Source of the DNA: Guillardia theta CCMP2712
Lineage: Eukaryota > Protista > Cryptophyta
DNA: 64,000 nucleotides
Direction of reading: 5' to 3'
Assembly (NCBI RefSeq): GCF_000315625.1
Contig: NW_005434599.1
Coordinates: 377,175-441,174 of the forward strand
Under the pieces are notes generated by a model that saw only the letters and a list, made by a program, of their open reading frames with translations, ran no database searches and had not been told where the DNA came from. This document shows, piece by piece, positions 12,291-17,800 of the stretch (its first letter is position 1; every line of letters begins with the position of its first letter). The position numbers and the translations under genes were made by a program.

Positions 12291-12449
12291 GCCCTGCCGC
12301 TCGCTCGCTCACTTGCTGCTGCCATTCAATCATCGCCTCTTTTTCTTCGTCTCGCCTCTCGCCTCTCTTGTTGCTTCTGCTCGATTCTGCTTGTTTACTC
12401 GTGATGATTGTATGGCGCAGGGAGTTGGCGTTGGAGGAGCGACTGCACC

Positions 12450-13478
12450 ATGTCCTTTCCAGACAGTCAAGCCGCCTACAGGCTTCTGGTCAAGTCCATG
12501 TCGCCATGGCCGTTGTTCTCTTCCAACTGGTTCCGCATGTTGGAGGGGATACAGCAGATCACAGACGCAGCTGTGCTAGAGAACAAGAACGTGGATAGGG
12601 ACACACAGGCCAGCACAACGCTGTGGGAGAGGAACGAGCTGATAGTTCGATACATCCTCGAAGAAGGGAAGCTGAACCTTACTCTGAGGCTGCTGGTGGA
12701 TTTCAAGGACCTGCAACGGCAGGAGCAGTTTGCGAACAAGCTCTCGGCAGCGAAGCAGGCGGAGCCCAACGCGAGCTTCGACGACTTGTCGACGATCAAG
12801 ATCAAGGCAGCACTGTTCGAACAAACTCTTGGAGTGCTGATACTCTGCTCCATCACGTCGATCGAAGCCTTGCAGGTCATCGACTTTCCACTCTTCATCG
12901 AGCACATTGCTAAGACGTTGGAATTTGCCCTGATGCACCCTGAGATGGTGCGGTCACCCGATTCCTATAGAAGACAAGAAGTCTTGGCTGTCTCCTACAT
13001 ATTTCACATCCTACAAGCCATGGACCAGCTGCAAGAGGATAGAATAATGGAAGTGATGCAAGAGAAGAAAGTTTTCCCGTCCTTGGTCAGGAACATAGCC
13101 ACCTATCACACCTACTACCAGACGAATGTGAAGAAGCATTCTGTCATGGTAGGCTGTGTTGGACCCCTTCCTGAAATCTCACCTTCCTCCCAGGCGGTCT
13201 CTTCCTTTGTCAACACTGAAGCATTCAAGACGAACCCGAAGGCTTTCCTGCAGGACGATGAGACCAAGTCTCTGATCGTCTCGTTGGAGGAGAGTTTAAT
13301 CAAGGTTCTTGTGAGGGAGGGCGAGCCGAGGCCTGATAGGTGGCAGGAACATTTCTCAGACTACTCGAAGAAGAAGTTGATTCGGGTCCGATGTGCTGTC
13401 GTGCCCGATCGTTGAACTAACGTTGCTCACTCGCAGCCTTTGCTAGACTTCATCTTGCGGAACAAGCCCCCCAAGTGA
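12450..13478 (+). CDS. Conserved-looking alpha-helical protein resembling the ZMYND10 N-terminal domain; no MYND finger; 3 short introns
   Basis: ORF 12408-13415; introns 13149-13193, 13305-13346 and ~13386-13436; motif similarity described in findings. Confidence 0.6.
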
Positions 13479-13691
13479 GGACGGGGGAGACAAGCCATCA
13501 AGCGTGGAGAGCAGGGTGGAAGGAAGAAATGAGAGAAGTGGGGAAGAGATAGAGAGGGAAAGAGGGTGAAGGAAGCGAGGTAGAACAGAATCTCAAGTGT
13601 TATTAATCAAAGTCAAAATGTTCTCGGATCCTTGCCGCCAGGTATATTTCTAGAGATACGATAATTTGAAAGGCGAGGCAAGAGAAGGGAG

Positions 13692-16619
13692 TCATCCAAC
13701 CGGAGAGTCGTTCTTCTTGAGCAGCCCGAAGTTCTTAAGGATCTTGATCTGGTGTGCTCGCTTCGTTACGTTGAGATCATCCCAGAGCTGGTCAAGTACG
13801 TCAAGCATGCTTCCGTCGATGCTATTTTCACGGAAAGCTGAGACGTGTTCCTTGAGCTCAATCTGTTCGAGCTTCCGGCAAACGTCATCGACCGTCATGC
13901 TAAAGACTGGAGGCTCTGTCGCTGCGGAAGTCTTGGAGTTTGCAGACGAAGAACTTGACTGAGTTTCCACATCGCTGAGCATCTGCGTCAAAGCCTCCTC
14001 CATTGCTTGTGCATCAGGAAAGCGTTCCTTCTTGTCCTTTTTCAATGCCATGCGAATGAAGTTGTTGCATTTGCTCGAGACGCCTTCGATCAGAGGAGGC
14101 GTGAGGTGGAGGATGTTCAAGCCAAGATTAGAGTGTTCTTCGCGTGTCAGGCAAGCATCTTCGATAGACAGTTCTCCTTCGTTGCTTGTCTGCCCTTTCA
14201 GATTTACAAACGGATGATTTCCTGAGAGCATCTTGTAAAAGATGACGCCAAGACTCCATACATCTGTCCTGATGTCAATGTCCATGGTCACTCCTCGCAC
14301 TTGCTCTGGTGACATGTACAACGGATTTCTCAGCAGATCTCGCGCTTTCGATGTTTCTGGCCTGAGAGGATCATTCTTCTGCATTCCCACATCAATTATC
14401 ACAATTCTATTGTCTTCCGATGATATCATTACGTTCGATGGTTTTAAATCGTAATGTGTTATTCCTCTGTAATGTAAATTTGCCACTCCATGCACAAGCT
14501 GTGATATGAAATTCTTACTATCTTCCCAGGGAAGCGCTTTGTCTTGCATCAAACTTTCTAGAGTAACACCATCTATATATTCCATCACAACTATTAGCTG
14601 GCTGTCAGATATTCCTGCATCCAACACCTTGACAATGTTGCGGTTCTCAACCAGCTGTAATTTCATTAACATTTCCATATCGTGGTCGTTCTCATCTGTA
14701 AATCTTGAGTTACACAATTTGATTGCGACAGTCTCATTGCGCTTATCCCTCCCACGATAGACTTGACTCATCGATCCCACCGCGACTAAAACATCTAGAG
14801 AGTACTTGGTGTCATTCAGGATTATTTGACGGACACTCGATCTAATTGTTGCTATCTTTGTCGGAACACTCCTGCCATACGAACAGTCTGCAGGACACAC
14901 GCCATCAAGAATTCCAGATAAAATATTTAAAATATTTTCGCAAGATTGTTCGAATGTTTTAGGGTCCATCTTCCTGTTTTTCCCTCTATGTAAGAGGAGT
15001 CGGTCACTTTCATTCATCAAGATCATGATATTCTCACGTATGACTGGATCCTGCAGCATTTCTCTGTGTGTAAGGATAGTTCCGAGTGCTGTCACATCCC
15101 ATTTTGTGTAAGATTGTGATAAGATCTTGGTACGTATACTAGATGACTTGACATCACATCGGCTTATTAGATTTCTTGCATTGATATCTTGCCATGAATT
15201 TCCTGTCATGGATTGCCACAGATGAAGAAATGCATCCTGCATGACTTCCGAGCCAAGCTCAGTGATAAGTCTACAGTATTTGCCATAATTCTCTGCATCA
15301 ATTTGTTCTGGTGTTTTTGATTCTTTTCGATTTGCATCTGCATTGATGATGTTATCAAATATGAATGAATTCTGACCAGGCTGTATCGGTGGAACTAGGT
15401 CCAGAGAGAAGGGGCTGCAGATTTCTGCCCATAGAGCAGATTCAAAGTAGGGTGGCCTTCCATTGCTGTCATCGTGAAGATCATCATTACTCTTAGCAGC
15501 AACAGAATGGTCGACTTGTTGTGGAATTACAATCTCTGAAATTTCAGGCTTCTGCTTCTTATTCTTCACCACTCTCTTGGTCCAATCGATTTCAAAAACG
15601 CTTTCACACTTCATAAGTAATTCTAGATAGTAATCAGGTTTGTATTTGGCATCTGCTGTCATGATACTTGATGCAGCTTCTGCAGCGTCCTGGAAGGACA
15701 TATCTTTCTTACCCAATTCTCCTAGTCTGCGCCGAATTTCTTGAATGTAGAGAATATTTGACCTTGGTTTTGCATCTATGATAGAATTTCCATCTTGTAG
15801 AACAAGTTGACGGTTTCTGCACGCTTCCAACGCATTTTCTGCATCTTCAAAATTTACGAAATTCACGAAGGCGTAACCATCCATGAGACGAATTGGCGGC
15901 AGTCCATTGCTTTGCACCAAAGGACCGAATGCACTAAAAGCCTTCTCTAAACTTGATGCATCAGCATCATAAAGATTCATGACGTAAAGAGTAAAGCATA
16001 GCAACGTTTGCTTGATTCCGTCGCATTTGATATAAACAATTGGTACCGGATGATTAGGGTTCTTTTTACGATGTTCTTCTTCAATCCACTTCTCATAATT
16101 ATACTTAGCACGAAGTGCCTCCTCTGAATTACGAAAATTGAAATACACAAGCGGACATCCATAATATCGCGGATCGTTGTCTGTTGCAACAATGTAGAAT
16201 ATTGCCTGCGGGTGAAAATCATTTTTCAGCTTCACACAAATTTCTTCCAATCCATCGTCTTGACGCATCCATTTTAAGCATACTGTTTGGTTAGGTTGAA
16301 AAGGTTGTTGATTATTGTTGTAAGGCTTACTTTTCAAATAAACTATGGGTTTTTCCATACCTCCTGCACCCCAGATCTTTGCATGTTGTACTTCGATCCA
16401 TTCCTCAATTCTCGCACGTGCATTTACAGCTTGTTCATGATCAGCATAATTGAAGAAAACGAGAGCACTTCCCTCATTTTGTGGATCTGAATCCTTGTTT
16501 ATGCACAGTGAGCAGGCTTGTGGCTTGATATTATCGTATATGCTTTGGCAAATCTCCTTCATCTCTTTCACTGGCCTGAGCCATTTGACGCAAACTGTTT
16601 GGTTAGGAGGAAAGAACAT
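13692..16619 (-). CDS. Intronless multidomain protein: RRM-like x3 - putative wHTH - HEPN (DZIP3-like) - Ser/Thr kinase - SAM
   Basis: First ATG at 16619; RNP motifs LYVMNL and GYAFVNF; kinase VAIK, HYDLKPSN, IIDVG, YMSPEQ, DVWSLG; SAM TVDDVCRKLEQIELKEHVSAFRENSIDGSML. Confidence 0.85.
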   Translation of the reverse strand: MFFPPNQTVCVKWLRPVKEMKEICQSIYDNIKPQACSLCINKDSDPQNEGSALVFFNYADHEQAVNARARIEEWIEVQHAKIWGAGGMEKPIVYLKSKPYNNNQQPFQPNQTVCLKWMRQDDGLEEICVKLKNDFHPQAIFYIVATDNDPRYYGCPLVYFNFRNSEEALRAKYNYEKWIEEEHRKKNPNHPVPIVYIKCDGIKQTLLCFTLYVMNLYDADASSLEKAFSAFGPLVQSNGLPPIRLMDGYAFVNFVNFEDAENALEACRNRQLVLQDGNSIIDAKPRSNILYIQEIRRRLGELGKKDMSFQDAAEAASSIMTADAKYKPDYYLELLMKCESVFEIDWTKRVVKNKKQKPEISEIVIPQQVDHSVAAKSNDDLHDDSNGRPPYFESALWAEICSPFSLDLVPPIQPGQNSFIFDNIINADANRKESKTPEQIDAENYGKYCRLITELGSEVMQDAFLHLWQSMTGNSWQDINARNLISRCDVKSSSIRTKILSQSYTKWDVTALGTILTHREMLQDPVIRENIMILMNESDRLLLHRGKNRKMDPKTFEQSCENILNILSGILDGVCPADCSYGRSVPTKIATIRSSVRQIILNDTKYSLDVLVAVGSMSQVYRGRDKRNETVAIKLCNSRFTDENDHDMEMLMKLQLVENRNIVKVLDAGISDSQLIVVMEYIDGVTLESLMQDKALPWEDSKNFISQLVHGVANLHYRGITHYDLKPSNVMISSEDNRIVIIDVGMQKNDPLRPETSKARDLLRNPLYMSPEQVRGVTMDIDIRTDVWSLGVIFYKMLSGNHPFVNLKGQTSNEGELSIEDACLTREEHSNLGLNILHLTPPLIEGVSSKCNNFIRMALKKDKKERFPDAQAMEEALTQMLSDVETQSSSSSANSKTSAATEPPVFSMTVDDVCRKLEQIELKEHVSAFRENSIDGSMLDVLDQLWDDLNVTKRAHQIKILKNFGLLKKNDSPVG

Positions 16620-17049
16620 TCTCGTTGAGTAGGATGCGAGAAAGAAGATGAATCTTCGGCTCGCAACTGCGGAAAAGGAGTAGAAAGCTGTTCCTCGAAA
16701 GGCTTCACAGATATAGAGCAAGTTGATATCAAAGTTGCTGTTGATTCGATGGGATTACGAATTCAGTGATCTGCAACTTAAAGAATTGAGCAACGACTGA
16801 TGGTTTCGTTGTCTTTTTCCTTGTTCCTTCATCACCTTTGCTCTTACTTAGTCTCTGTCACCGTCCACGCTAGAACCCTAATATTTATCTGTCGCCTGGC
16901 CTTTCGCTCTACCTCCTTTCTTCTTGCCTACCACCGAGCGCAAGCAAGATGTCACCCTCAAGTCCTCCCCGCTGTCTTCCCTGCCTCTCCTGTCCACTTC
17001 TTGTCCCTCTTTGTGTTCTTTTTTTGTGTTTTTTTTTCCTCTTTGTTTC

Positions 17050-17800
17050 TAGCCGCCAACCCAGTCCTCTACCCCACCTCTGTACCGCTACCCTTACCTG
17101 GACCCACCCAGGGGCTATGGTACCCCTACCATCAATGTGACCAATGCAATAGGCAACTTGCAAGGATCATCCTTTGATGCCCTTTACTATCTAAATATTC
17201 CAATAAGATCATTATGTTATAAAAGGTATCCATATGGCCTTTGTAAACAACATCCCCCACCCCCACCATATATGAATGCCCACCCCACGATTCATACTAC
17301 CCTTTAGCCGCTTGATTTCCCATTTCTTTTGTACCATCTACCCCCTACCCACACTGACCCAGTACCCCCTCCTCTTCCTATCCTCTTCCCTTCTCCTAGT
17401 AGGACTTTAGAGCCCTTGAACTACCCCACCCTTTTGTTGCACGACTTAGGGAATAGCACCCCACCCTGAACTACCCTACCTAAGTATACCATTGTTCATG
17501 CCATTGCTCGTGCCTCTACCCACCCAACCAACCATACATGTCAAGGTTACTTCACTACCCCATTTAGAAGCCAATACTACCCACCTTCTGGTAAGTTGCA
17601 GCAGATATACTACCCAAAATAATGGATTATAGTACCCCACCCCGCTGTTCATGAAGTACCCACCCCACTTCATATCACGGATTCAAAACTTGGTAGCCCC
17701 CTGGCTACCCTACTCGAAGGCTTCGGCGAACTAAATCGAGTGCTCGCCGACCGGGCCGGGGCCGTGGGCTCAGTTTGTCCGGATCCGGCCGGGCCGCTAC
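17050..17800. promoter_or_regulatory. Divergent promoter region: TACCC-rich block, CAAAACTT (17684-17691), CCGG/GGCC block
   Basis: Motif clustering between divergently oriented genes; the same layout recurs elsewhere in the window. Confidence 0.45.

Follow-up and report, generated by a model that had tools for sequence, protein, structure and literature searches.

The 64,000-nucleotide window analysed here belongs to contig C75 of the 87.1-Mb, 669-contig genome of the cryptophyte Guillardia theta and carries, at 13692–16619 on the minus strand, a single intact open reading frame (ORF) of 975 residues (ATG at 16619, TGA at 13692–13694). The question raised by this locus is what a protein does that combines RNA-recognition motif (RRM)-type domains, a HEPN domain, a Ser/Thr protein kinase and a SAM domain in one chain, which an earlier note, drawn up from the nucleotide sequence, had proposed as a candidate RNA sensor resembling RNase L and PKR. 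The gene is, with near certainty, real and expressed, and encodes a multidomain RRM–HEPN–kinase–SAM protein (hereafter the query protein) of a cryptophyte-specific HEPN–kinase family. At a probability of roughly 0.55, we consider that this protein works as an RNA-binding signalling kinase, in which the altered HEPN domain would act as a pairing, regulatory or ligand-binding module and the SAM domain would promote assembly.

Transcription and gene structure

The coding sequence (13692–16619, minus strand; 975 codons plus TGA) was delimited by the ORF and by a 92%-identical orthologue of 974 residues from the Hanusia phi transcriptome, which was the sole close relative recovered among 5.8 billion proteins. 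In both species the frame is free of stops and frameshifts, and in Guillardia it stays open back to 16721. Transcript contigs from three runs of different studies cover 13436/13596–17035/17057 unbroken and without a joint, and one of them, 3440 nucleotides in length, corresponds exactly to 13596–17035. Since three GT..AG introns (42–51 nt) of a plus-strand neighbour within 300 bp are spliced out of these same contigs, the latter derive from RNA, and since they run unbroken over the HEPN–kinase gene, this gene is transcribed and has no intron. Both the possibility of a silent gene, considered in the earlier note, and its description as an intronless ORF of about 975 residues in an intron-dense region are thereby settled, the former in the negative and the latter as proposed. 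The mRNA was accordingly placed at 13596–17057 on the minus strand (~3.44 kb), with its 5′ end near 17035–17057 and its 3′ end near 13596. Raw stranded RNA reads pile up in the minus direction over 13505–14047, at the 3′ end of the HEPN–kinase gene; those from the neighbour map in the opposite, plus orientation up to a poly(A) tail at 13628.

The 5′ untranslated region (UTR) spans ~420–440 nucleotides and contains a single upstream ORF (uORF) of 25 codons (16755–16832, minus strand), the start of which is the sole ATG of the transcribed leader upstream of the main start. Such a uORF within a long 5′ UTR might provide translational control. The gene has a GC content of 42%, both overall and at third codon positions (GC3); its flanks have 51% GC and its paralogs 56–76% GC3.

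The middle domain is a DZIP3-type HEPN

The region between the N-terminal head and the kinase (residues 438–600; 14820–15308, minus strand) is a DZIP3-type HEPN domain by both profile and fold. It matches three other large open frames of the genome, and a profile derived from an alignment of seven cryptophyte copies retrieved 428 proteins at E ≤0.001 among 1.84 billion representatives. Pfam HEPN_DZIP3 (PF18738) matches six of the seven copies in the alignment and was also present in 33 of the 88 profile matches that were scanned (best 3.4e-28). Several matches from molluscs, nematodes and metagenomes score above the Pfam gathering threshold; their partner domains are TPR/Sel1/zf-MYND or nSTAND3. 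The query protein and its orthologue were compared using hhalign with ten non-cryptophyte members of these three sources retrieved by the family profile, four of which score above the gathering threshold of PF18738, and this gave a probability of 98.0% and an E-value of 2.6e-13 over 129 columns. Pfam applied to the query protein alone returned no HEPN match, and a PF18738 search of the genome weakly matched two paralogs and did not find the query locus.

The AlphaFold2 (AF2) model of residues 438–600 comprises seven helices and has a predicted local distance difference test (pLDDT) value of 91.4 and a predicted template modelling (pTM) score of 0.86. Compared with ESM Atlas clusters annotated as HEPN_DZIP3, the model gave template modelling (TM) scores by query of 0.72–0.81, with 145–157 of the 163 residues aligned. 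The best match among solved structures was the HEPN domain of Csm6, with a Z-score of 9.3 that lies well above those of the following entries; AbiF, Swt1, sacsin, Cas13, MtlR and two small HEPN proteins were also among the solved matches. A Foldseek search of the model against the PDB returned only chance helical matches (E >1). The domain includes the segment at ~15290–14905 for which the earlier note had proposed a HEPN, while allowing that it might not fold as one; profile and fold both identify it as HEPN.

Where its relatives have R-N-x-x-x-H, the query protein has the degenerate motif S538-D539-R540-L-L-L-H544 (14988–15008, minus strand), as placed by a 53-sequence alignment and the hhalign register. 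Both the Arg and the Asn position show conservation of at least 90% in that alignment, and RNxxxH was found in almost all of 70 homologues inspected. Besides the Ser and Asp at these two positions, the query protein has, according to hhalign, one extra residue before the invariant His544. HEPN RNases act as dimers through an Rx4–6H motif (PMC3710099), which is not found here, as H544 is kept and R540 gives only Rx3H. The Hanusia orthologue reads R538-D-R-L-Q-L-H and thus retains the Arg, in an Rx5H arrangement, with Asp for Asn. As the RNxxxH motif of the HEPN_DZIP3 family is described as "mostly conserved" by Pfam and by a 2013 survey of HEPN domains (PMC3710099), its loss is compatible with membership of the family. 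The replacement of the Arg–Asn pair makes an RNase output of the RNase L/Ire1 kind doubtful for the query protein and, with the His kept, points to a pairing/regulatory or RNA/nucleotide-binding domain rather than a canonical endoribonuclease. Judged by these residues, the altered HEPN is probably non-catalytic and the kinase the main output. A HEPN homodimer prediction, performed without controls, scored 0.00 and is evidence neither for nor against pairing.

The protein could instead be both an active RNase and a kinase, i.e. a functional analogue of RNase L or Ire1, in which paired HEPN domains would form a composite site from H544 and either R540 or another basic residue, with the kinase as a nucleotide-dependent dimerization switch. 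The intact and confidently modelled fold is consistent with this, as are the invariance of His544 across the family, the proximity of R540 and the Rx5H of the orthologue, which fits Rx4–6H. The presence of RNxxxH in nearly all relatives indicates that the ancestral module was very probably an RNase, and the giant SPRY-type paralogs that lack an HxDxKxxN loop yet keep RxxxxH (QRDEFVH in L030) follow the pattern of RNase L. However, Arg and Asn are both replaced in the query protein and a residue is inserted before the His, and its kinase retains all catalytic residues, so that it is no mere scaffold. Moreover, the HEPN precedes the kinase, which means that the geometry of Ire1 and RNase L is not simply transferable. 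On balance, we regard an active RNase as unlikely.

Kinase and SAM domains

The kinase (residues 614–874; 13998–14780, minus strand) was identified by Pfam Pkinase (PF00069) with 144.7 bits, and its assignment in the earlier note was correct. It keeps the Lys of VAIK, the Asp and Asn of the catalytic loop HYDLKPSN, the Mg-binding Asp of DVG, and SPE; its glycine loop has the sequence A-x-G-x-x-S. The catalytic loop itself (residues 722–729; 14433–14456, minus strand) was found to be a non-RD variant by comparison within the family, as HYD and DVG occur only in the query protein and its orthologue and the 13 other members with a recognizable catalytic loop have HRD and DFG. Read from these motifs, the domain is a non-RD kinase in which Val replaces the Phe of DFG and all essential kinase residues are present. 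Non-RD kinases are independent of activation-loop phosphorylation.

The best matches among solved kinases were bacterial Stk/PknB, ULK and CDPK. Beyond the 92%-identical Hanusia orthologue, the nearest kinases are only 26–33% identical, which led us to reject the notion of a conserved housekeeping kinase orthologue, an outcome that the earlier note had held open. Of note, the best matches outside cryptophytes are not eukaryotic families but bacterial Hanks-type kinases (from Sorangium and other myxobacteria, Acidobacteriota and Planctomycetes), and a bacterial origin of the kinase of this family is conceivable.

The C-terminal SAM domain (residues 909–968; 13716–13895, minus strand), likewise anticipated, was detected above the Pfam cut-offs by both SAM_2 (28.1 bits, cut-off 20.5) and SAM_1 (24.5 bits, cut-off 23; PF00536/PF07647). 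It shows weak similarity (E 4e-5) to the C-terminus of a giant SPRY-type paralog. SAM domains self-associate.

The N-terminal head

The head begins with two related units, residues 1–105 (unit 1; 16305–16619, minus strand) and 106–205 (unit 2; 16005–16304, minus strand), both of which contain PNQTVC and share 40% identity over 94 residues (E 1e-24), so that unit 2 is a tandem duplicate of unit 1. Neither unit was matched in a Pfam scan. A profile of the units against PDB sequences returned weak matches, five of eight of which are RRMs with E-values of 0.03–1.6, led by a La-like protein (0.03) and followed by MIP6, hnRNP Q and nucleolin. An AF2 model of residues 1–360, built on a four-sequence alignment, has a mean pLDDT of 44.7. 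Within it, unit 1 adopts the order beta-alpha-beta-beta-alpha-beta at pLDDT 60–79, and RRMs are the solved structures that it matches best (eIF3b, Z 8.3; MTHFSD, 8.1; then U1-70K, RBM5, RBM45 and Hsh49; overall range 7.5–8.3), although other ferredoxin-like folds score nearly equally and model confidence is low to moderate. Unit 2 is poorly modelled (pLDDT <50). The strand motifs VCVKW and LVFFNY, the latter followed by E-x-A, resemble those of the canonical RRM. Taken together, the model and profile matches indicate that units 1 and 2 are probably divergent RRM-like domains; the duplication that the earlier note had pointed out is firm, and the RRM fold that it assigned to both copies is probable.

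The third domain is a canonical RRM (residues 212–271; 15807–15986, minus strand), as had been noted, with 32.2 bits for Pfam RRM_1 (PF00076; cut-off 20.7) and both RNP motifs intact (RNP2 LYVMNL and RNP1 GYAFVNF). It is followed by a putative small alpha/beta winged-helix-like domain (residues 286–356; 15552–15764, minus strand), modelled as a-b-a-a-b-b at pLDDT 53–62, the solved matches of which include the winged helices (WH) of cullin (WHB), MCM8, SelB and DpnI with Z-scores of 7.0–8.1. The earlier note had likened this stretch (~15760–15565) to LOTUS/OST-HTH. This identity found no support: PF12872 was not found by Pfam at E-values up to 10 or by PDB profile search, no usable LOTUS/OST-HTH match was obtained in an ESM Atlas feature search, and LOTUS structures were absent from the top 50 fold matches, which leaves a generic winged-helix resemblance. 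Residues 357–437 (15309–15551, minus strand) form a disordered linker, in which Pfam finds no family and which is 91% identical to that of the Hanusia orthologue.

When the head alone was used as query against the 5.8 billion proteins, no match was obtained. The Guillardia genome contains a stand-alone paralog of the head, L002 (contig C122, L002:1132–2358), which comprises one PNQT unit with a long Pro-rich insert, an RRM and the winged-helix-like segment, which is conserved there, and has no HEPN, kinase or SAM.

An RNA-binding head could also be that of an ordinary post-transcriptional regulator, namely an RNA-binding kinase that acts on messenger ribonucleoprotein particles, splicing or translation factors and has no role in defence, with a HEPN that is structural or binds RNA as in the E3 ligase DZIP3. 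The near-complete conservation of the RRM-type domains between the two species (98–100% identity), the intact RNP motifs of the canonical RRM and the occurrence of transcript contigs in several independent studies argue for such a role, as does the fact that human DZIP3/hRUL138 is an RNA-binding ubiquitin ligase and not an immune RNase. Against it stand the lack of any orthologue beyond the Guillardia/Hanusia lineage among the 5.8 billion proteins and the character of the family, which is lineage-specific, swaps its heads and evolves fast, all of which is unusual for core RNA metabolism. We consider an ordinary regulatory role of this kind unlikely, much as for an active RNase.

A cryptophyte family with interchangeable heads

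The seven-copy HEPN alignment finds 11 places in the genome, the query locus included, all of them in long open frames; a kinase directly C-terminal to the HEPN was counted at nine of them. In Pfam scans, the HEPN lies directly N-terminal to a kinase at these loci except for those on C6, C474, C13 and C33; on the first three, the frame or the contig ends before the kinase. The search for paralogs with swapped domains, suggested in the earlier note, thus yielded at least ten further HEPN copies, most with a kinase and with heads that differ. Four (C12, C240, C6 and C474) have a head of SPRY and beta-helix with weak Nup98-GLEBS matches, one (C22) a beta-helix head, one (C33) ARM repeats, and three (C89, C93 and C71) another RRM-like head together with an EF-hand after the kinase. 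Among the 15 genome kinases most similar to that of the query protein, seven belong to HEPN loci, which indicates that HEPN and kinase evolved as one module. Where a source is named for HEPN–kinase proteins, it is Hanusia, Geminigera or Rhodomonas; the remainder are from metagenome contigs. As far as can be read from these sequences, a cryptophyte-specific family is built around a conserved core, a HEPN with a kinase after it, to which interchangeable heads are joined; some of its members end in a SAM and others in an EF-hand.

The triple-RRM and winged-helix head was otherwise found only in the Hanusia proteins P0001 and P0002 and, without the core, in L002. The paralog P0002 has an RRM head that is 50–77% identical to that of the query protein, yet its HEPN and kinase are only 17% and 32% identical, respectively. 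It keeps RNxxxH, HRD and DFG and has no SAM; in the tree, its core falls with that of the beta-helix type. No orthologue of P0002 was found in the Guillardia assembly. The shared head and distant core imply that either heads and cores recombined or one core diverged extremely.

The query protein and its orthologue constitute the only lineage with both the HYD and DVG changes, the S-D motif being that of the query protein, and they occupy the longest inner branch of the HEPN–kinase module tree (2.4 changes per column). Identity to the orthologue is 98–100% for the three RRM-type domains, 96% for the SAM, 88% for the kinase, 86% for the winged-helix-like segment and 82% for the HEPN. These data might be taken as signs of a decaying or neofunctionalizing duplicate, whose core came under relaxed constraint after duplication or recombination and of which only the RRM head is functional: the branch is the longest of its kind, signature motifs are altered in HEPN and kinase alike, the HEPN is less conserved than the disordered linker (82% vs 91%) and GC3 is atypically low. 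Such decay is hard to reconcile with a frame of 975 and 974 residues intact in two species, the retention of every essential kinase residue, a HEPN model at pLDDT 91.4 and a 96%-identical SAM. We deem it very improbable, and less likely than either an active RNase or an ordinary post-transcriptional regulator.

Some members of the family deserve separate mention. The SPRY/beta-helix paralogs L023, L030 and L007 (on C12, C240 and C6) have no recognizable HxDxKxxN catalytic loop, and their kinases are probably pseudokinases to judge from their sequences. L030 and L007 keep RxxxxH in the HEPN, the opposite of what is seen in the query protein. In L025 (C33:531500–541499), which has the order ARM repeats–HEPN–kinase, the kinase continues in a second frame (C33:535189–535755), owing to an intron or a frameshift. 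L008 (C474:3000–6658) is a partial HEPN copy, truncated where the contig stops; it is almost identical to the gene on C240 and may represent an assembly duplicate or a very recent duplication.

Proposed mode of action

In the signalling-kinase reading that we favour, the HEPN would be packed directly against the N-lobe of the Hanks-type Ser/Thr kinase and the RRM array would bind RNA. Several copies on one RNA, in conjunction with SAM self-association and HEPN pairing, would bring the kinase domains together, which would then phosphorylate themselves or their targets.

A number of points weigh against this reading. Kinase activity might suffer from the DVG that replaces DFG and from the changed glycine loop. 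The very long branch of the core, together with a HEPN that changes faster than a disordered linker, could reflect relaxed constraint instead of function, and the GC3 of the gene is far below that of its paralogs. Units 1 and 2 and the winged-helix-like segment rest on the model with a mean pLDDT of 44.7 and on weak profile matches. Finally, R540, two residues past the canonical Arg position, might substitute for this Arg, and this residue and the Rx5H of the orthologue suggest that the loss of RNase activity in the query protein is not certain.

Lineage-specific expansion, head swapping and fast evolution of the core would, by analogy, fit a role in surveillance or conflict, which is a guess. 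In its fullest form, this guess would see cryptophyte innate-immune-type receptors built on a HEPN–kinase(–SAM) core with swappable sensor heads and convergent to RNase L, Ire1 and PKR. The query protein would be the RNA-sensing member, in which foreign or aberrant RNA bound to the triple-RRM head would trigger assembly through SAM and HEPN, and the output of the kinase, possibly with residual RNase activity, would shut down the infected cell. We hold this scheme to be speculative and, as a whole, rather unlikely.

Comparison with known systems

The 2013 HEPN survey places the DZIP3/hRUL138 family chiefly in animals and notes its expansion in Nematostella, oyster and Capsaspora, and its listing for this family contains no kinase, no RRM and no alga (PMC3710099). 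Full-text literature searches yielded no paper that links HEPN with Guillardia in the HEPN–kinase sense. The cryptophyte-only HEPN–kinase family is previously undescribed. The earlier note did not recognize the architecture; the query protein is no singleton but one head variant of a family. With DZIP3/hRUL138-type proteins (PF18738) it shares a homologous middle domain of the same fold and, with those of animals, the character of lineage-specifically expanded multidomain proteins with variable partner domains (PMC3710099). It differs in its kinase partner, RRM head and cryptophyte host, and in lacking the RN of RNxxxH. Within the genome, the core of HEPN then kinase is shared with the paralogs (SPRY/beta-helix–HEPN–probable pseudokinase–SAM and RRM-like–HEPN–kinase–EF-hand), from which the query protein is set apart by its triple-RRM and winged-helix head and its GC3 of 42%.

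RNase L and Ire1 also join a Hanks-type kinase fold, a HEPN-superfamily domain and a ligand-sensing head in one polypeptide, with oligomerization as the expected switch. Their HEPN, however, is of the KEN type and C-terminal to the kinase, whereas that of the query protein is DZIP3-type, N-terminal and degenerate in its catalytic motif; a Pfam scan of the query protein gave no KEN/Ribonuc_2-5A match, and the region after its kinase is the SAM. The RRM array has as its counterparts ankyrin repeats that bind 2-5A or a lumenal domain. The pairing of HEPN with a kinase is an independent fusion and not the result of descent from RNase L/Ire1. PKR resembles the query protein in that N-terminal RNA-binding domains precede a kinase, which in PKR is activated by clustering on RNA, but its dsRBD has no counterpart here (no dsrm match in the Pfam scan of the query protein), and HEPN and SAM are not found in PKR. 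Furthermore, eIF2-alpha kinases were absent from the 60 best solved matches and the 120 best database matches of the query kinase. Given the DZIP3 family, the reversed order and the lack of both a dsRBD and eIF2-alpha-kinase affinity, the comparison with RNase L and PKR is one of analogy only: the union of kinase, HEPN and RNA-binding-type domains described in the earlier note holds, and the specific likeness to these proteins, which would entail a KEN, a dsRBD, eIF2-alpha-kinase affinity or a canonical RNase motif, does not.

From bacteria to animals, conflict systems employ HEPN domains as RNases or sensors, and RNase L and Ire1 are both built on the combination of a HEPN with a kinase. The independent emergence of this combination in a secondary-plastid alga, with another HEPN family, the opposite order and swappable sensor heads, widens the DZIP3-type family to organisms other than animals and their relatives, with kinase and RRM as new entries among its known fusion partners. 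Should these proteins prove to be surveillance receptors, protist innate immunity would become accessible to experiment through them, and the mutual dependence of the two activities could be studied in a natural series: HEPN and kinase both active, an active HEPN beside a dead kinase, and the altered HEPN with non-RD kinase of the query protein. Should the query protein instead be an ordinary kinase that binds RNA and carries a fossil HEPN, the result is the modest annotation of an orphan gene.

Further kinases and the neighbouring gene

Query-like kinases also occur at C37:54026–54619, C186:50363–50956 and C23:175373–175678 within giant open frames (2259, 2177 and 2502 residues, respectively) that the HEPN profile did not find; these might represent additional relatives whose middle domain differs or has diverged strongly. 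In the window, the converging neighbour occupies 12408–13628 on the plus strand, with introns at 13148–13192, 13303–13344 and 13385–13435 and its poly(A) site at 13628. The 3′ ends of this gene and of the HEPN–kinase mRNA (~13596) overlap by ~30 nucleotides, and assemblers fuse the two mRNAs.

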